The notes beneath the pieces were generated by a model. It ran no database searches, had not been told where the DNA came from, and saw nothing but the letters and a program-made list of their open reading frames with translations. From IMG/VR virus record IMGVR_UViG_3300044700_000691, positions 1 to 64,000 of that record: a stretch of DNA of 64,000 nt; one strand, given 5' to 3'. Below are positions 9,835-41,823 of this stretch, one piece after another. Within the stretch, counting starts at the first letter, position 1, and every line of letters begins with the position of its first letter. A program made the position numbers and the translations under genes.

Positions 9835-10062
9835 CTACCCCTTTGGCTTATTGGCATCTGCGATAGCACTCCTAATTGCACCAGTTCCCATTACTGTCTT
9901 GCCGATAACCATCCAGCCCATTGCGGAGAGCCAGGTAATTTCGTGTAGACCTTGATCAGGGCCAATGCTATTCCATATTACCTTAAGAAAAAAGGCTTCG
10001 AGCATAAAGCTACAGACACCGACAAATAGTTTGTAAATTGCTTCTTTTGTTTTAGTTGACAT
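9835..10062 (-). CDS. small membrane protein, 75 aa
   Basis: hydrophobic segments. Confidence 0.7.
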   Translation of the reverse strand: MSTKTKEAIYKLFVGVCSFMLEAFFLKVIWNSIGPDQGLHEITWLSAMGWMVIGKTVMGTGAIRSAIADANKPKG

Positions 10063-10127
10063 ATTATATCCAGTTTAAGATTTTAAATAATACTTTCGCG
10101 ACTATAAAGAACACGATTATCTTTAGG

Positions 10128-10158
10128 GCTAATATACCCAATTTCTCGATAGTTGACA
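10128..10158 (-). promoter_or_regulatory. degenerate early promoter cassette
   Basis: TGTCAA...TATATTAGC. Confidence 0.45.
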
Positions 10159-10167
10159 AGAGGCTGG

Positions 10168-10470
10168 TCATATGCTGCTGTTGAAAAATAGCTTTACCTC
10201 TTTACGACCTCTAGTATTACCAAGCTTTACCTCGCTCTCGGTAATTTCTATTTCAATTACCCTGACCCCATTTGCAAAATGGTGCTTATCAAATCTGAGT
10301 CTCCCTTCGTTGGTAAATCTCTCGACAACTTCGCCACCTCTTAGCCTGCTAAACTCGGCCTCGCTAAGGGTTAACTCTTGCCCAATACTCCAGTGGACAG
10401 GCTTTACACTACGACCTGACTCTTCGCGAATAGGTTCGGTAACGGTTAATTTAAATTCTTTGTGTATCAT
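10168..10470 (-). CDS. hypothetical protein, 100 aa
   Basis: ORF behind cassette 10492. Confidence 0.7.
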   Translation of the reverse strand: MIHKEFKLTVTEPIREESGRSVKPVHWSIGQELTLSEAEFSRLRGGEVVERFTNEGRLRFDKHHFANGVRVIEIEITESEVKLGNTRGRKEVKLFFNSSI

Positions 10471-10491
10471 CGTATATCATTTAGTTATAGA

Positions 10492-10538
10492 GTAAATATA
10501 ACCAATTAACTTGACACCCAAAAATAAAGTTATTAACA
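10492..10538 (-). promoter_or_regulatory. early promoter cassette
   Basis: TATATTTAC, with TGTTAATAAC about 20 bp closer than in most copies. Confidence 0.75.
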
Positions 10539-10718
10539 ATTATCCCAGCTAGTCGGGCTATCTTCAGCTGTTACCTGCCAAAACTGGCCAAGGTTATCGC
10601 GCACAGTTAGCACGTCTGGTGCTACTACTTCTACAATACCCGTGATAGGGGCTTCTAGCTCTTCGAATTTCTGTAACCATTGGATAGTATCTCCCGGTTT
10701 AAAGTCTTGTATCTGCAT
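10533..10718 (-). CDS. small SH3/KOW-like protein, 61 aa
   Basis: FKPGDTIQW...GIVEVV pattern. Confidence 0.65.
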   Translation of the reverse strand: MQIQDFKPGDTIQWLQKFEELEAPITGIVEVVAPDVLTVRDNLGQFWQVTAEDSPTSWDNC

Positions 10719-10721
10719 ATG

Positions 10722-11027
10722 TTATAGTTTGTTTATAGCTGCTTCGCGTTTAACCCGATAGAATAACTCAGCAGCCCATTCATATTCTTCCCTAGCAACC
10801 GCCACGTCGAGCGCAGTAATACAGGCATGGTATAGAGCATGTAATAAGTATTCAAGATACTCTGCACTCCAATCCTCTTCGCCTGCTGTTTTACCTAGGT
10901 CTTCGACTATCTTGCCTAGACAGTGGCGTATCGCCTGCTGGTCTCGACCTACTCCTTCCAGCCCAGTAAGGATTCGGTCTTTAATTAGTGTAGATAAGTA
11001 TTCAGGCATCTCCTTTTGGTTTAGCAT
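10722..11027 (-). CDS. hypothetical protein with UVR-like motif
   Basis: AVAREEYEWAAEL. Confidence 0.7.
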   Translation of the reverse strand: MLNQKEMPEYLSTLIKDRILTGLEGVGRDQQAIRHCLGKIVEDLGKTAGEEDWSAEYLEYLLHALYHACITALDVAVAREEYEWAAELFYRVKREAAINKL

Positions 11028-11033
11028 TATAGT

Positions 11034-11041
11034 TATTATAC
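11034..11041 (-). promoter_or_regulatory. middle-class promoter box GTATAATA (representative; also at 9827, 18326, 19157, 33941, 38341, 40537, 41136, 47538, 48458, 63979)
   Basis: exact 8-mer just upstream of minus-strand non-structural genes. Confidence 0.6.
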
Positions 11042-11094
11042 TAGGCTAGGGGTATAGGTTTACCTGCGCAGAGTAGGTACAGGGCTAGTGCAAT

Positions 11095-11492
11095 ACCTCC
11101 TGCTGGACCGGCTGGAGACCTGCCTGGAGCTGCTGGTCAGGCTAGCCCAGGAGGCTATATAATACCTACCCAGGACCGGTCTGGTACTGCTCCTGGCTGC
11201 CCTGGGGACCGTCCTGGCAGCTGTCTCCAGGTGACTCCTGGGGTACACCAGGACAGGTCCAGACTGCTCCTGGGTGACCCTGGGGAGCTGTCCAGGGGCT
11301 GCCCCGGGGCCTATCCCTGGTATAAGTTTTTGTAGCCAGGGGGAAGCAAGCATTTTTACTTTTTTCTCTTGTCTCCCCGGCTTGGCTAGTGGTCCAGACC
11401 TTTTTGCCTAGATTCATTTATCCAGGGGCTTTTCCTCGGGGCATTTCTACTGGTGGCGAATTTCCCCTGGCTTGGGGGCTGTTGTCCAGGTC
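11095..11492. repeat. GC-rich non-coding array of 17 CCWGG motifs at the strand switch
   Basis: CCWGG at 11123, 11147, 11170, 11192, 11201, 11213, 11227, 11237, 11248, 11269, 11279, 11292, 11316, 11336, 11422, 11466, 11486. Confidence 0.8.
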
Positions 11493-11500
11493 TTTTGCTA

Positions 11501-11507
11501 ATAAATA
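11501..11507 (+). promoter_or_regulatory. late-class promoter ATAAATA (representative; also + at 14318, 18367, 19195, 24669, 25548, 28288, 33961 and - at 13964, 32561, 33122, 42451, 46450, 50213, 53610, 57118, 63909)
   Basis: resembles T4 late TATAAATA; precedes structural and leader-bearing genes. Confidence 0.65.
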
Positions 11508-11532
11508 TCTTTATAACTATAACAATATTATT

Positions 11533-11958
11533 ATGAACAGGATTAAAAGATTTAGTGAGTATCTAGTAGAGGCAGTAGCCTTAGATCAATTGGCTACTCA
11601 ATTAGGTGGTACCGTGGAACCTATCGAGGGGGTAACAGACTGGTCAGCAGTTAGAGGTTATCTAGATATTAACCGTGAAAAACTTAAGACCAGCTTAGAA
11701 AAGGCAACTGGAGATAAGATAACTGCCATGGTAGTTATTAAGGTTACTGATATCTATGCTGAAGACAAGAGGGACGGGGTAACTCCTGATCCAGACTGGT
11801 TAGGTGCAGATCCAATTGTAGACGATGCAACTCCAGATCTACAAGAAATGGTTAAGGTAGTTATTTCAGCAATACAGCAGAGTCTTGCTAAATCCGATAC
11901 AGCAACCCTAGCTAAGTTTAGTACAGCAGGTAAAGGCATCAAAACAAGTAGATATTAA
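11533..11958 (+). CDS. putative capsid-internal protein (leader MNRIKRFSEYLVE), 141 aa
   Basis: start moved from 11389 to the ATG after the late promoter; capsid-targeting-sequence (CTS)-like leader. Confidence 0.75.
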   Translation: MNRIKRFSEYLVEAVALDQLATQLGGTVEPIEGVTDWSAVRGYLDINREKLKTSLEKATGDKITAMVVIKVTDIYAEDKRDGVTPDPDWLGADPIVDDATPDLQEMVKVVISAIQQSLAKSDTATLAKFSTAGKGIKTSRY

Positions 11959-11961
11959 TCT

Positions 11962-12612
11962 ATGAAACATATCAGACTATACAAAGATTTTATTACCGAA
12001 GAGGTCCAGTCTGGTGTTGTGCACTGCAGTGGTAAAAGCTGTAACTGGAGTTGGAATCTAGCGGATGGCTTGGATGGCGGCGAAACCAATCCCTATCTAT
12101 GTCACAAGTGCTGGCATGACAATACCCCTGCTATTACCGAATCTGCGGATCCTTTCTGGACCCAATATGTTAGACTTGTTGATCTAGGTATGATTGATCT
12201 AGAGGATTGGAGCAAGATTAAAGATGATGTAGTATTGCTAGTTAAGGAGCGGTTAGCCAGTCACTACCCTAATTTAGATGTAGAAAAACTGGCATTTGAC
12301 GAAATCAGGATCCACCAGCAGGGTAAAGGCGGGCGCGATCCTTATTATAGTGTCTATATTGATAAGGGCGTTAACTATAGTTATAAGGTATGGAATTGCA
12401 GATTGGTAATTCGTTTTCAAAAGGCAGCCGGTCGACTTGATAGTAGTCAGCTTATTACGGTACCTGACTATTTCTGGGAAAGACCAATTGGTGGGTATCA
12501 ATGGATACCAAGCACGGTTGCACAGAGTAGGTGGATAGCAGACGAAATTATCAAGTGGATGGACAAGGTCTTTGTACCATTTATCGGTGTTGAAATAGAA
12601 GAAACCAACTAA
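11962..12612 (+). CDS. putative capsid-internal protein with N-terminal Cys cluster (zinc ribbon)
   Basis: leader MKHIRLYKDFITE; CxxxxC...CxxC; RLVDLGM motif. Confidence 0.75.
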   Translation: MKHIRLYKDFITEEVQSGVVHCSGKSCNWSWNLADGLDGGETNPYLCHKCWHDNTPAITESADPFWTQYVRLVDLGMIDLEDWSKIKDDVVLLVKERLASHYPNLDVEKLAFDEIRIHQQGKGGRDPYYSVYIDKGVNYSYKVWNCRLVIRFQKAAGRLDSSQLITVPDYFWERPIGGYQWIPSTVAQSRWIADEIIKWMDKVFVPFIGVEIEETN

Positions 12613-12614
12613 CT

Positions 12615-13187
12615 ATGAAATATTTAAAACCATACCGCCTATTTGAATCCGCTGAAGAGATTGCCGCAGCTAGGCGCATGTTGGCACTAGGCTTAATAGA
12701 ACCCGAGGATTTTAAACAGAAATTACAGGAGCTTGGTTTGGATAAACAGTATCGTAGCGAATTTGTTGCCGCCCTCAAGACCCTATTTGCGGATCTTGGG
12801 CTAGAGTGGCGGGATTGGGCAACAGGCCGCCAGGCGGATAATGGTACAGTCGTGCTTAAAATTAGCCCAGCTGATGCAGCCGAAATTCTCTTTACTGCTG
12901 ACTTGCCTAAGGGCTTAAGCCCTGCTCAAGAGGCACGCTATGCAAAGATAAAAGGGGAGCTGCAGCAGTGGCAGCGTCAAATGGAGATGGAGACCTCATT
13001 GAGCTCTAGGTTTGAATACTGGATTTTCCCAGGTTCTCTACGTAACTCTGGTCGAATTGGCCAACCAACCTCTAACCGTCAGGTTATATTCGATGGCTTA
13101 ACTGAGCCGGGTACAGCCCTGGCCAGATTTATGTACCAAGTTGCACTTGATGCCCATGGTCGTAGTTGGCGCTGGGGTAGGCGCTAG
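12615..13187 (+). CDS. putative capsid-internal protein
   Basis: leader MKYLKPYRLFE; RMLALGL motif. Confidence 0.75.
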   Translation: MKYLKPYRLFESAEEIAAARRMLALGLIEPEDFKQKLQELGLDKQYRSEFVAALKTLFADLGLEWRDWATGRQADNGTVVLKISPADAAEILFTADLPKGLSPAQEARYAKIKGELQQWQRQMEMETSLSSRFEYWIFPGSLRNSGRIGQPTSNRQVIFDGLTEPGTALARFMYQVALDAHGRSWRWGRR

Positions 13188-13253
13188 GCCTCACCACTCT
13201 TAACCCCAACCCCCTTGCGCGGGCGCACTCGGCGGGGTCCAGGAATACTGCAT

Positions 13254-13278
13254 AAAAAAAGAGGCTAGGCGCCTCTTT
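13254..13278. terminator. terminator between convergent genes
   Basis: AAAGAGGC/GCCTCTTT stem with an A run on the left. Confidence 0.65.
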
Positions 13279-13305
13279 AGTAATTTAAGATATAGGTGAG
13301 TCTAG

Positions 13306-13941
13306 CTAGGCTAGGTCTCCACCAATAAGATCCGCCTCAACCTGGGCTGGGGTCTTATCAAAATTTTCTCGCCAGTAATCAACTATAGTTTGGCCCTCAG
13401 TTGCCTGTTTATTATAGGTTACTTCACCATGTCCCCAAACTGCATCCTTTTCATAACCAAGATATTTCATTAGTTTAAAAGCTGCAACCACCTGGATAGG
13501 TAAAACATCAGCATCGTCTTTAGCAATAACCTCTACGCCCTGAGCAGTTTGATTCTGCAAGTCATGTGGGGCATCCTTTTGATCACTATGACCAGCATGC
13601 CAGCCAACTACACCATCAGGTAAGGTTTGAAATACTTTACCATCACGATCAATAACCCACTGGACTCCAAGTCCGCGATCATTTAAAACATTAACTACAT
13701 CCTCAGCACGGCCTCGACCTGCAGTATGGTGTACAACAAAATATTTGTCGTCTTTTAGCGGGTCCATTCGTGGCTGGGTCGCTTGGGCTGAAATATCTTC
13801 AATTTCTTGTTTAAACTCCTGTTTAAATTCCGAATCTGAGACTTCGGCAGAGTCTGCTCCCGGTTCGCCAGTAAAGGCAGACTTTACCTTATCTGCGATA
13901 TCGCCTAACCAGCTTTCAAATAATTTAATGTGTTGTGGCAT
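13306..13941 (-). CDS. N-acetylmuramoyl-L-alanine amidase (Amidase_2) with CTS-like leader
   Basis: VVHHTAG, WVIDRDG, GWHAG, GVEV and WGHGE motifs; leader MPQHIKLFE. Confidence 0.85.
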   Translation of the reverse strand: MPQHIKLFESWLGDIADKVKSAFTGEPGADSAEVSDSEFKQEFKQEIEDISAQATQPRMDPLKDDKYFVVHHTAGRGRAEDVVNVLNDRGLGVQWVIDRDGKVFQTLPDGVVGWHAGHSDQKDAPHDLQNQTAQGVEVIAKDDADVLPIQVVAAFKLMKYLGYEKDAVWGHGEVTYNKQATEGQTIVDYWRENFDKTPAQVEADLIGGDLA

Positions 13942-13976
13942 CCTATAATAGATTTATTTGAGTTATTTATTTGCCA

Positions 13977-14255
13977 CTATTCAGTCTGATGATCATAGTA
14001 CTGACTAAACTGAATAAATGCTGGTGGATTGACCTCGTTTAGCCACTCGAGCGTAAATTCAGTACGGGCAATTGTAACATTGGCAATAAATAGTTCGGCA
14101 TGCAGCGAATCAATTAGGGCCTCGCGCTGTTCAATAAATTGCTTTTGTGCGGCGACTTGCCCAGCCAGTTTGCGGTTTGACACAATTGAGCTAACCGCAA
14201 TGGTTAAAAGTACTAACCCAGTTGCAACGGCGGCAACAATACTTGATTTTTTCAT
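13977..14255 (-). CDS. N-terminal TM/signal plus coiled-coil protein
   Basis: hydrophobic N-terminus. Confidence 0.7.
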   Translation of the reverse strand: MKKSSIVAAVATGLVLLTIAVSSIVSNRKLAGQVAAQKQFIEQREALIDSLHAELFIANVTIARTEFTLEWLNEVNPPAFIQFSQYYDHQTE

Positions 14256-22753: not shown

Positions 22754-23389
22754 ATGAAAATTAAAAGATTTAATCAATTTATAAATGAAAGCGACGGTTA
22801 TCTAGAAGAACCAGCCGATTCAGCATTTAACGAAATCTTAGAACAAATTGCAGATGGTATGGATAGCTGGAGCGGTTACCGGGCATATCTAGATGAAAAT
22901 AATAGCACGCTACATATTGATCAGGATTGGAATATTGATGACCTAAACTTTCAGGGCGAAGAACCTAGGGTTTATGCAAGTTATGCAGTTAGACTTAGGC
23001 TTGCTTTTCAAGATGATGAATCCGAATTATCACCAGAATTAGTTAGACTTTGGAAATTGGGCTTAGCCCCAGTTACAGATTTAATTAAAGGATTTAACCA
23101 TTCATGGGCATTTCAAATTGATTCAAAGGACGTTTCGCAATTAGACATTGCCGATGGCGATTTAAGTAGTTATGAATTTATATCAATTGAAGATCTTACT
23201 GGCGGTTCCATGAATAATTTAGATGATATTGACTCTTTTTGTAGTGAACTTGTAGAAACTCTTAACGATTGGCGAGATGAAAATACTTGGATGTTACACG
23301 AGAGAGTTCAAGAAGAATTAGACGAAATCTCTGGACCAAATGAAGACGATGAAGAAGACGACGACGAAAAAGATCCTGATAAAGATTAA
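22754..23389 (+). CDS. very acidic putative capsid-internal protein
   Basis: leader MKIKRFNQFINE; D/E-rich; RLWKLGL motif. Confidence 0.8.
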   Translation: MKIKRFNQFINESDGYLEEPADSAFNEILEQIADGMDSWSGYRAYLDENNSTLHIDQDWNIDDLNFQGEEPRVYASYAVRLRLAFQDDESELSPELVRLWKLGLAPVTDLIKGFNHSWAFQIDSKDVSQLDIADGDLSSYEFISIEDLTGGSMNNLDDIDSFCSELVETLNDWRDENTWMLHERVQEELDEISGPNEDDEEDDDEKDPDKD

Positions 23390-23393
23390 GATA

Positions 23394-23478
23394 GTTGAGG
23401 TTTAATACCTCACTTTAGGACCGGGACTAGTTCACGGGTTGGGCAGAGAAAAGTTCGCTACTATCTCTGCCCTTTTTT
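23394..23478 (+). ncRNA. candidate structured RNA complementary to 23S rRNA H69-H70
   Basis: three hairpins; TTAGGACCG, TAGTT-C-ACGG and TTCGCTAC are reverse complements of the conserved 23S segment CCGUAACUAUAACGGUCCUAAGGUAGCGAA. Confidence 0.5.
23441..23478 (+). terminator. intrinsic terminator with a 14-nt loop
   Basis: GGGCAGAGA/TCTCTGCCC plus T6. Confidence 0.75.
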
Positions 23479-23959
23479 ATTTACGAGGTTCAGTGTTACC
23501 AATAAATTGGTTAAAGACATGTTGGACTAACCATGGTTCAACGTTTGGAATCATTTGTAAAAATTCAAGTTCCCATAAATAGCAGTCTGCCTCTTCTGCA
23601 CTACCGCTACTATAATTAATAGTATTAATAGAGATCCATAGGTGTTTGCTCTCGTGAACAATTACTGCAGCTATATTGTTTATTGAATTTAATTTAAAAT
23701 CATCCCTGGATATTACGATTGTACCCAGTTCACTTCCTTTGCCAGGTTGTGTAGTTGAAGTTTTTCCATTCCACATTGAAATATGATTGCACGATTCTTG
23801 AACCATTTGCCAATGCTTCGGCGAAGTTTTCTTAATTAAAACTAGAGCTGAATCAACTTTAGTCGACCAACTGTCTCCGCCTTTATCGACAACTATTTGA
23901 GCATTTGCCCAATTAGTTATAAAAAACAGGATAATTATAATTAAAAAATGTCTCAACAT
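23477..23959 (-). CDS. secreted zincin-like metallopeptidase
   Basis: signal peptide; IVHESKH...EEADCY. Confidence 0.7.
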   Translation of the reverse strand: MLRHFLIIIILFFITNWANAQIVVDKGGDSWSTKVDSALVLIKKTSPKHWQMVQESCNHISMWNGKTSTTQPGKGSELGTIVISRDDFKLNSINNIAAVIVHESKHLWISINTINYSSGSAEEADCYLWELEFLQMIPNVEPWLVQHVFNQFIGNTEPRK

Positions 23960-23963
23960 AGCT

Positions 23964-23992
23964 AAAAAAAGCCGAGGTTTTACGCTCGGCTC
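23964..23992 (-). terminator. intrinsic terminator
   Basis: AGCCGAG/CTCGGCT stem with a T run on the minus strand. Confidence 0.7.
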
Positions 23993-24003
23993 TAAATTTT
24001 TAA

Positions 24004-24627
24004 TTAAAGATCTTTTGGTTCTTTGCCGGTCGCTTTTCTTATAAAAGCAGCGGCTGCTGCTTCAGGATCCTTCGCCCAACCAAAATATTTTTTAGATTTT
24101 TGTTTAAAATCTTTTGAGCCAGCTTCCTGATCTCTAAGCATTTTTTTCATTTCTGCTTTTTTTAGATTTGGAAATTTCTTATCGGCATCCTTTAAAACTT
24201 CTGCTCTTTTCTTTTCTAAGATAATAAAGTCTGAGCACTTCATAACACGTCTACTTTCAAAACCATTGTAGGAGGGCTCGTCGTCTACTACAGAATCAAT
24301 CCATTGCTGTTTTTTCTGATTCGCTCTTTGCGCTTTTACTTCAGCCTGTTCTCTACGGCTATTATAACCAGTATCTTCGGCTGAAAGTTTTTTATGTAGA
24401 TCTAGTATTTTAATTGCAAGATCTTTTTTCATAGGGTGACCTTTTGGAAGTTCTCTAAGTTTAGCTTGTAGTGATTTTAGCTCAGCTTCATCACCAGATC
24501 CATACTCTGGTTCTTCTTTTTCAATTGGTTCAAACTCATCTGCAAAATCAAAGTTTGCAGCTGGAATTGTGTCAAAGTCGTCTGGGTTGAACTCCAGGTC
24601 GTCTTCTTCATGGAATCTAGGTTTCAT
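24004..24627 (-). CDS. hypothetical protein with acidic N-terminus and basic C-terminus
   Basis: internal CTS-like segment VMKCSDFIILE. Confidence 0.75.
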   Translation of the reverse strand: MKPRFHEEDDLEFNPDDFDTIPAANFDFADEFEPIEKEEPEYGSGDEAELKSLQAKLRELPKGHPMKKDLAIKILDLHKKLSAEDTGYNSRREQAEVKAQRANQKKQQWIDSVVDDEPSYNGFESRRVMKCSDFIILEKKRAEVLKDADKKFPNLKKAEMKKMLRDQEAGSKDFKQKSKKYFGWAKDPEAAAAAFIRKATGKEPKDL

Positions 24628-26179: not shown

Positions 26180-26364
26180 TTTATGGGGTCTATGTAAAAC
26201 TTTTTATAGTCATAAAGATCCGCACACTTTTCATATTCTTCCCTGGATTCTAACCAGTGGATTACTTCATCTATTCTTGACCAGTATTTGGAATTATATC
26301 CATACTTATCAAGGTCCTTAAAGACCTTTTCCATTTCCTCATCGGACGTATTCTTCTTTACCAT
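26176..26364 (-). CDS. small protein with UVR-like motif
   Basis: LESREEYEKCADL. Confidence 0.7.
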   Translation of the reverse strand: MVKKNTSDEEMEKVFKDLDKYGYNSKYWSRIDEVIHWLESREEYEKCADLYDYKKFYIDPIK

Positions 26365-27316
26365 GCGAATATGAATATTTTGGCTGTACCTTTATAGTAT
26401 ATTTAACCTCAAGGTTAAGCAAAATATTCATGCACTCAACAAAGTCCGCTGTATGCAAATTCAAGACACTTTGATAATCGTCTTTACGATATCCTCCAAA
26501 TAGAGCGCAACTTACTGGAAGAGGCCTGCCTAACTTTTTATCCATGGATTTAACCCAATTCCAAAAAATTGTAGAGCACTCTAACCATTGTTCAGTTGAA
26601 CACTGAAATCCTAAATCATCCCATTCATGCGAGTCTGCACCATGACACCATACAACATATCCAATTTGGCCAGTTAAGATAGCCTCTTCTAATTTTTGTA
26701 GATTCCATTTAAGATTATTAATATATGAAGTACCTCTGCCAATTGGATTAATATTAAATTCAGAAGGAACAGCTTTATCTAAATCTTTAACAAATGCCCT
26801 AGCATCTTCAACCGAATTTCCAAAGTGTCCGTCTAGATCTAAATAAGCTCCGCTTAATCCAAACTCTTGTAGGATTTTAATTGATGCAATAACTTGACCA
26901 CTAAATGTACAGAAGCCGCTGCCTCCATCTGGTCGAGCATGGTGAAATCCGCTAGTTGGACTAAAATGAACCTGATCTGGTTCTACAATAGAACCCCGTA
27001 TTGCAGCGTGCAGTGATGCATTAGTATAGCGAACTGACTCTGCAAATTGAGTAGACCAGTCGAGTCCATTTGATTCACAGCCTTTTTGTCCACTAAAGAA
27101 TGAATTTACATATCTTTTAGTGTGGGCAATCTTAAAATCTTTATTTGTATATGGTGTAAAATCTTCAACAATATCAAAATGTTCGCCTAATCCCTCTGCC
27201 TCAAAATTTTCAAGTAACCTCTTTGGTTTTAGCGGAGACTTGCTAAAATTACCACCGGAGTCCTTTGCTAGGACCTGTTTAGGTGTGTAGTGTACTTTAA
27301 TTGTATTTTTTCTCAT
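26339..27316 (-). CDS. histone deacetylase family (HDAC/AcuC-like) amidohydrolase
   Basis: GFHHA...GFCTF, LDLDGHFGN, GADSH..D and GGY. Confidence 0.9.
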   Translation of the reverse strand: MRKNTIKVHYTPKQVLAKDSGGNFSKSPLKPKRLLENFEAEGLGEHFDIVEDFTPYTNKDFKIAHTKRYVNSFFSGQKGCESNGLDWSTQFAESVRYTNASLHAAIRGSIVEPDQVHFSPTSGFHHARPDGGSGFCTFSGQVIASIKILQEFGLSGAYLDLDGHFGNSVEDARAFVKDLDKAVPSEFNINPIGRGTSYINNLKWNLQKLEEAILTGQIGYVVWCHGADSHEWDDLGFQCSTEQWLECSTIFWNWVKSMDKKLGRPLPVSCALFGGYRKDDYQSVLNLHTADFVECMNILLNLEVKYTIKVQPKYSYSHGKEEYVR

Positions 27317-41149: not shown

Positions 41150-41632
41150 CTATTCGATAGTTTCAATCAATCGTTGAGCAATTATCTGCTGAGAACGCGA
41201 TAATTTAGTAATTGCCTCTTGTATTGGGATAAATCCAGCCCAATCTACCTCCTCGGCCTGTAGTTGTTCTTTAGGTACCTTCGGCGAAGCAAGGCCAATT
41301 TGTTCAAGGCTCTCAATGCGTACGTCAAAATAAGCGCAGCGACTGTGAGGAATACCGCGACGGTAAAATACAAAATATTTCTCATGTTTATCAATTAGTT
41401 CTGGATCTACCGTAATCCCGGTCTCTTCCCTTGTCTCACGAATTGCGCAAGTTAAAAGATCTTCACCATCTTCGATTCCACCTTTAGGAATGCCAAATGG
41501 TTGGTTCTTCCAACTTGCATCAGAAGGATGAATTAATAAAAGTTTTCCTTCCCAGATAATAGCCAAGCCGGCTGCTCGAATTTCAAGCTGCTTTTCGCTC
41601 TCTGCTAAATAATCTGTGAATGTAAAAATCAT
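41150..41632 (-). CDS. NUDIX hydrolase with CTS-like leader
   Basis: PKGGIEDGEDLLTCAIRETREETGI Nudix box; leader MIFTFTDYLAE. Confidence 0.9.
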   Translation of the reverse strand: MIFTFTDYLAESEKQLEIRAAGLAIIWEGKLLLIHPSDASWKNQPFGIPKGGIEDGEDLLTCAIRETREETGITVDPELIDKHEKYFVFYRRGIPHSRCAYFDVRIESLEQIGLASPKVPKEQLQAEEVDWAGFIPIQEAITKLSRSQQIIAQRLIETIE

Positions 41633-41823
41633 TTATTGTCTGCATCGTTCTTTTTTTGAATGTACTTTGCTTTATTAATTTCAGATCTTCTTTTAACACT
41701 AGGTTTTACAAATTCTTTACGATCACGTAAATTTTGTAACTGTTTAGTGTCAATGACCTTTCTTTTTAATTGTTTGAGTGCTCTTTCCAAAGACTCTGAA
41801 TTTCTTATATCAATTATTAACAT
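41629..41823 (-). CDS. rpsU: ribosomal protein bS21
   Basis: MLII.I...ESLERALKQLKRK....LRDRKEFVKPSVKRR (Bacteroidota type). Confidence 0.9.
   Translation of the reverse strand: MLIIDIRNSESLERALKQLKRKVIDTKQLQNLRDRKEFVKPSVKRRSEINKAKYIQKKNDADNK

Follow-up and report, generated by a model that had tools for sequence, protein, structure and literature searches.

A conserved family of structured phage RNAs with two exposed segments complementary to 23S ribosomal RNA

A structured RNA of roughly 90 bases at the end of a phage operon belongs to a large, previously unannotated family of phage RNAs. Two exposed segments of the RNA stay fixed while the stems around them drift. Together these segments match, as antisense, one of the most conserved stretches of bacterial 23S ribosomal RNA. 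This suggests, but does not prove, that these phages address the ribosome by base pairing. On present evidence, a split antisense to the H69/H70 strand of 23S rRNA is the best reading, with a probability of about 0.4.

The element was found in a window of 64,000 nucleotides (positions 1 to 64,000) of IMGVR_UViG_3300044700_000691, a 217-kb contig. The phage is myovirus-like, with a large terminase, a baseplate wedge protein and a DNA ligase, and it has no close relative among GenBank phages. The element fills the 87-nt gap between two convergent open reading frames (ORFs). It consists of a 5' flank (TAA-GATAG), a hairpin P1, a single-stranded joiner, a small hairpin P2, a 3-nt linker, and a hairpin P3 that is followed by a run of U. 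Both strands fold better than shuffled sequences (z = -3.3 and -4.8). The coordinates are collected in Table 1.

Table 1. Position of the RNA element, its parts and other features of the 64-kb window.
Feature	Position	Strand	Description
Segment of higher GC	10001-14000		44-45% GC in a window that is otherwise 33-38% GC; may be a recently acquired segment
Upstream ORF	22754-23389	+	211 aa, acidic C-terminus, no family hit; its TAA stop (23387-23389) is the first three bases of the conserved 5' UAAGAUA of the element
Whole RNA element	23387-23477	+	Match to covariance model R1 (58 bits, E about 1e-15); only copy in the window
5' flank	23387-23395	+	Conserved, A-rich, UAAGAUAGU (family consensus UAAAGAUA)
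Hairpin P1	23396-23412	+	6 bp, TGAGGT (23396-23401) paired with ACCTCA (23407-23412), loop UUAAU
Block (a)	23413-23423	+	CU-UUAGGACCG, within ACTTTAGGACCG (23412-23423); single-stranded up to the CCG that opens P2; complementary to 23S 1920-1930 (one G-U here)
Hairpin P2	23421-23437	+	CCG/CGG plus GA/UC, loop CUAGU; TAGTT (23428-23432) and, after a bulged C, ACGG (23434-23437) are complementary to 23S 1908-1916 in this copy only
Hairpin P3	23441-23472	+	9-bp stem of an intrinsic terminator, GGGCAGAGA (23441-23449) paired with TCTCTGCCC (23464-23472), 14-nt loop
Block (b)	23454-23461	+	UUCGCUAC in the P3 loop (DNA TTCGCTAC); complementary to 23S 1930-1937
U-run	23473-23478	+	T6 of the terminator; overlaps the stop codon (23477-23479) of the convergent ORF
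Downstream ORF	23477-23959	-	160 aa, convergent, weak phrog_1365 hit; not part of the element
Second hairpin	23968-23993		Between two - strand ORFs; scores as a terminator on both strands (9 pairs on -, 7 on +); no conserved loop
Next ORF	24004-24627	-
ORF with histone-deacetylase-type domain	26339-27316	-	PF00850, E = 2.5e-16; unusual cargo for a phage
NUDIX hydrolase gene	41150-41632	-	Directly downstream of the bS21 gene
Ribosomal protein bS21	41629-41823	-	PF01165, E = 2e-12; 18 kb from the element

A sequence-only reading of this stretch had noted three blocks complementary to a single 30-nt target around the H69 bridge helix, E. coli 23S 1908-1937, with the last block in permuted order. 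This observation is correct. The 30-mer is present with 100% identity in the 23S gene of all 5426 E. coli genomes. It starts at base 1902 of the annotated 23S in one record, which is consistent with the position of about 1908 given for it. The pairings listed (one G-U, one bulge, and the permuted order) are right as well.

In this one copy, however, the match is within chance. A 9-mer plus 8-mer cluster hitting one 45-nt stretch of the rrn operon is reached by roughly one random or genomic 90-mer in ten, so that similar scores do arise for shuffled sequences. The gapped local alignment scores 23, against 19 for the opposite orientation. A cluster statistic based on k-mers of 6 or 7 proved too permissive to be informative and was replaced by the exact enumeration described below.

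Conservation changes this picture. In three related contigs the flanking proteins are only 65-85% identical and the acidic tail of the upstream protein is rewritten, yet the intergenic element is almost unchanged and matches 23S better (CUUAGGACCG). An exact 23-mer core occurs in 41 IMG/VR contigs, and scans that fixed only part of the element raised this to more than 70 contigs and 45 distinct sequences. When only the 18-nt core was required, all 54 stretches returned also carried UUCGCUAC in the loop. When only GGGACUAGUU plus the loop was required, every one of the roughly 67 true members had UUAGGRCCG, with a single A/G variation.

The sequence-only reading had proposed that in related phages the stems should covary while the rRNA-complementary blocks stay fixed, and this is what was found. 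The covariance model R1 finds one copy in the window and 71 in the collected loci. On that alignment all 6 pairs of P1 and 8 of 9 pairs of P3 show compensatory double changes. In total 88.8% of cells are paired, against 41-51% when the partners are slid, and 0 of 500 shuffles reach the observed covariation. P2 has a 5' strand (CGGGAC) that is invariant within this subfamily and a 3' strand that is variable but complementary.

P3 is a canonical intrinsic terminator: a hairpin directly followed by a U-run, downstream of an ORF. The U-run is present in every short-type member, as the members with this terminator are called here. A consensus terminator scan missed P3 in the window only because its loop of 14 nt exceeds the limit of 8 used in that scan.

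The same two blocks occur in a wider family. Requiring only UUAGGRCCG and UUCGCUAC at a distance of 20-50 nt returned at least 120 stretches, which fall into two groups. The first consists of more terminator-type members with quite different P2 hairpins, variable in sequence and length. Among them, two loci (L126 and L153) have a core that is an 18-nt exact antisense of 23S 1912-1929, while a third (L110) has a P2 loop that is a plain UUCG tetraloop.

The second group is a "long type" of about 95-117 nt without a terminator, with about 64 distinct sequences (loci L085-L200; for example L150:7696-7808, - strand). It has a closing stem, block (a), an optional P2, a hairpin whose loop (GGCUGCU) covaries with the 3' tail (GUGAGC) as a pseudoknot, and a two-part stem that displays A-UUCGCUAC. 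The tail is followed by a sigma-70-like or CATAAATA putative promoter. The loop GGCUGCU is antisense to the 16S 530 loop, but this was rejected as chance since that loop covaries with the tail as an internal pseudoknot. The long type has one copy per locus, and a second covariance model (R2), built for the long type, found no extra copies. A phage contig (L152:1884-2294, + strand) carries a tmRNA gene that matches the permuted and beta-proteobacterial tmRNA models (130 and 118 bits).

Together the two scaffolds give 148 distinct instances in phages of 26-52% GC from marine and freshwater samples, which fits an invariant partner common to many hosts. The invariance of both blocks across this wider family is partly imposed by the search patterns. 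The base before block (a), opposite G1929, is C in 109 instances, U in 32 and A in 7, where the antisense of 23S has C. The base before that is C in 93 of 148. The only variable position inside block (a), A/G, lies opposite U1923, so that A-U becomes G-U. The three bases after block (a) follow the 23S antisense in only about 30%. The third block of the sequence-only reading (TAGTT/ACGG) is not conserved, and the long type varies the A of UAGUU. The three blocks thus shrink to two robust ones, (CC)UUAGGRCCG and UUCGCUAC, which cover a contiguous 18 nt of 23S, positions 1920-1937 (CGGUCCUAAGGUAGCGAA).

For two blocks of 9 and 8 nt fixed in advance, the exact probability of both matching the rrn operon is 1.8e-6 (antisense, gap of 2 nt or less) to 3e-5 (either orientation, gap of 25 nt or less). 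The conserved, exposed segments are in this sense complementary to one rRNA site beyond chance. Since the finding was selected because of the complementarity, its apparent significance is inflated. A fairer figure is the probability that a chance match somewhere in a 90-nt element falls exactly on the invariant blocks, which is about 12 of 6806 placements. In a thermodynamic cofold scan of the whole rrn operon the H69-H70 window is the best site for 5 of 6 members, although the runner-up sites are only 1-3 kcal/mol worse.

Other details do not follow the logic of pairing. The base 5' of block (b) is A or G in 147 of 148 instances, although U would extend the pairing to A1938. One copy found without any pattern bias (L263) has U to C in block (a), a mismatch to A1928. 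The target is also base-paired and partly buried at the subunit interface in mature 70S ribosomes. Access to it is nevertheless conceivable, since an antisense PNA against H69 is reported to block translation and growth in E. coli (Kulik et al. 2017, as cited in PMC12828698).

What the analysis establishes is a + strand structured RNA module with a terminator, strong purifying selection on two exposed blocks, and a modular distribution at the ends of ORFs. It is predicted to be made from the + strand as the 3' end of the upstream transcription unit. That the two blocks act together as a split antisense is inferred from sequence alone, as are the transcript, its binding to ribosomes and any benefit to the phage. 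The stretch 1920-1937 comprises the 3' strand of H69, the H69-H70 linker and the 5' strand of H70, and in some members the P2 loop would add contacts to the H69 loop. Binding would be to nascent or immature 23S, or to free 50S subunits. It may block the formation of H69 and bridge B2a (anti-association, an assembly trap), or it may tether 50S subunits to the 3' end of abundant phage mRNAs; which of these applies is speculation.

The interpretations of the sequence-only reading are thus supported only in part. Its antisense reading is compatible with all the evidence. Its alternative of a - strand RNA that mimics H69 as a decoy for rRNA-directed toxins or enzymes is very unlikely. The - strand of L126 and L153 is nearly identical to H69, but G-U pairs outnumber A-C pairs 19 to 3 in P1 and P3, which favours the + strand as the RNA. 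In addition, the U-run follows P3 on the + strand only, and in most loci both neighbouring genes are on the + strand.

A relic of a homing-endonuclease target site is equally improbable, although this region of 23S is a hotspot for rDNA-targeting mobile elements (I-CeuI, I-PpoI, R2, the Tetrahymena intron). Instead of a contiguous recognition sequence of about 19-26 bp, the best gapped alignment covers 24-26 nt with two gaps, and the GTAGCGAA part is displaced by about 30 nt in permuted order. The covariation is at the level of RNA, and no endonuclease gene was seen beside the copies examined. Finally, the suggestion of a ribosome-reprogramming module with phage bS21 is not supported. The bS21 gene is real, but it is distant from the element and unrelated to its distribution.

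The genomic context shows that the element is not tied to one gene. The short type begins 0-8 nt after a stop codon, and often the UAA of its own 5' consensus is that stop codon. It follows at least 13 unrelated genes, most often an RNR large-subunit gene; another is a tail lysozyme. The long type often lies after a large LysM-containing protein and before a small regulator-like gene. Beyond these, the neighbouring proteins gave no functional clue. A search of metagenomes anchored on one of the upstream protein families, rather than on the motif, returned 80 marine and freshwater loci. Only about 4 of the 52 distinct ones had the element behind the gene, and they gave no informative block variants. 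Among these metagenome loci (L201-L280), a family of 103-138 aa proteins with the motif LTYHHF.VK.PYY..A.EGK is widespread in marine (TARA, GOS) and freshwater phage contigs, with more than 500 confirmed hits.

This distribution, together with the terminator, points to the main rival explanation: a specialised 3'-end or terminator cassette that ends transcription units and stabilises the upstream mRNA. In this view the two blocks are read by a protein (a phage or host termination, processing or RNA-binding factor) or dock on each other in a tertiary fold, and the complementarity to 23S is a coincidence. The element always lies just after a stop codon, and in most loci just before the next gene or a putative promoter. 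Parts of it also occur alone: L062:679-731 (+) is the 5' flank AAGAUACC plus P1 followed directly by a U-run, and L107:6071-6167 (-) is a P3-like terminator with a near-consensus loop, AUUCACUAU. The compact pseudoknotted fold of the long type resembles those of aptamers and protein-binding RNAs, and the purine 5' of block (b) is conserved against the pairing logic.

However, this explanation has to accept both the coincidence calculated above and the 18-nt antisense in L126 and L153. No internal partner for either block, in the other block or in the rest of the RNA, was found by eye or by RNAalifold. A protein partner would be expected to co-drift across phages of such different GC content, and the loops of ordinary terminators are not conserved. 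The cassette reading is therefore somewhat less likely than antisense pairing, though not by a wide margin.

A cis-acting attenuator is unlikely. Here the blocks would sense a ligand, or the terminating ribosome of the upstream ORF, and set read-through into the downstream gene, for example nrdB after nrdA. In many loci the next + strand gene starts 30-120 nt after the element, and some of these gaps are too short for a promoter. The largest context is between the RNR large-subunit gene and a downstream gene of roughly 360 aa. The stop codon lies 17-33 nt before block (a) in the short type and usually 6-12 nt before it in the long type, so that a terminating ribosome would touch the element. 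On the other hand, in the window and in at least three other gene contexts the downstream gene is convergent, which leaves nothing to regulate and means that in the window the element cannot be a 5' leader. No antiterminator pairing was found, the long type has no terminator and is followed by a putative promoter of its own, and no riboswitch in Rfam matches even at E of 5 to 10.

A mobile or recombination cassette acting at the level of DNA, like the PeSL cassettes described below, is more doubtful still. Here the conserved sequence would serve homologous exchange between otherwise unrelated genes rather than an RNA function. The sporadic presence after unrelated genes would fit it. So would the flanking small paralogous ORFs that share the N-terminus MKIxISESQLK. 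Many otherwise unrelated small ORFs next to the element (in loci L017, L032, L036, L037, L056, L058 and others) start with the same peptide, MK(I/L)x(I/L)(S/T)E(S/E)QLK, which suggests shuffled gene cassettes or a shared 5' coding or regulatory segment. But the stems covary, so selection acts on RNA pairing and not on DNA identity, and conservation is confined to the unpaired blocks across very different phages.

The family is undescribed in the sources searched. No Rfam 15 family matched at its gathering score in the window or at the motif in 15 related loci, and permissive thresholds (E of 5 to 10) gave only noise. A scan of the window for tRNA and tmRNA found nothing. BLAST of the region and of two family members against 50,697 GenBank phage records gave no real hit. 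A scan of 185,579 bacterial and archaeal species genomes for the 18-nt core gave two hits, both attributed to chance: they have no loop block, score below 10 bits with the model, and one is the end of a convergent ORF. Literature searches for the sequence, for phage RNAs and H69, and for surveys of structured phage RNAs found nothing on this motif.

If the pairing is real, this would be the first natural RNA known to us that targets the large-subunit rRNA of bacteria by antisense. It would be made by viruses of many lineages, capturing or disabling free or immature 50S subunits, a mode of ribosome control for which no bacterial or phage example turned up in the literature searched. It would be aimed at the intersubunit bridge helix that antibiotics and synthetic antisense oligomers also target, and would open the directly testable question of how phages tune the pool of active ribosomes. 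Because the target sequence is the same in E. coli, the RNA can be tested in laboratory strains even though its own phages are uncultured. Even if the complementarity is incidental, the family is a large one in aquatic phages, absent from Rfam, with two scaffolds, well-supported secondary structure and unusually invariant loops.

Among known systems, the PeSL (promoter-early stem-loop) cassettes of T4-type phages (PMC2839356, PMC4122927) are also short intergenic cassettes with a terminator hairpin, placed between small variable genes of large myoviruses, often followed by a promoter, which in the present family is only putative, and sporadically present after unrelated genes. PeSLs are repeated within a genome and conserved as DNA, while the present element has one copy in the window and, with rare exceptions, one per locus. 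As to a following promoter, the next gene in the window is convergent. Relatives show the unconfirmed promoter-like sequences TTGACA..TATAAT or CATAAATA after the long type, and a recurrent TATTTATA box about 5-10 nt before the ATG of the next gene after the short type (L053:4465-4490, L056, L057, L058, L063). This box may be a promoter of these jumbo phages, and is the reverse complement of the T4 late-promoter box.

Bacterial sRNAs derived from 3'UTRs, such as CpxQ or SroC, share the terminator of an mRNA. Like them, the element lies directly after a stop codon, ends in the intrinsic terminator of the operon, has an A-rich 5' flank that could be a processing site, and has conserved single-stranded "seed" segments. 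Its seeds, however, would address rRNA rather than mRNAs, and there are two of them in permuted order, one inside the terminator loop.

Some eukaryotic viruses use complementarity to rRNA or bind ribosomal subunits, as in motif 1 of the calicivirus TURBS with 18S rRNA, or the 3' translation enhancers of plant viruses that bind 60S. These are likewise virus-encoded segments near a stop codon or in the 3' UTR with conserved complementarity to a universally conserved rRNA segment, but they mostly address the small subunit or bind by shape. Nothing comparable was found for phages or for 23S H69/H70 in the literature searched. The synthetic PNA against H69 is artificial, short and contiguous, while the phage RNA is structured and its blocks cover mainly the 3' strand of H69 and H70. 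Finally, T-box leaders recognize tRNA through two separate displayed segments that follow each other in the same 5'-to-3' order as their target sites, which is the "permuted" order seen here. Their sequence, fold and target are unrelated, and they are found in a 5' leader rather than at a 3' end.
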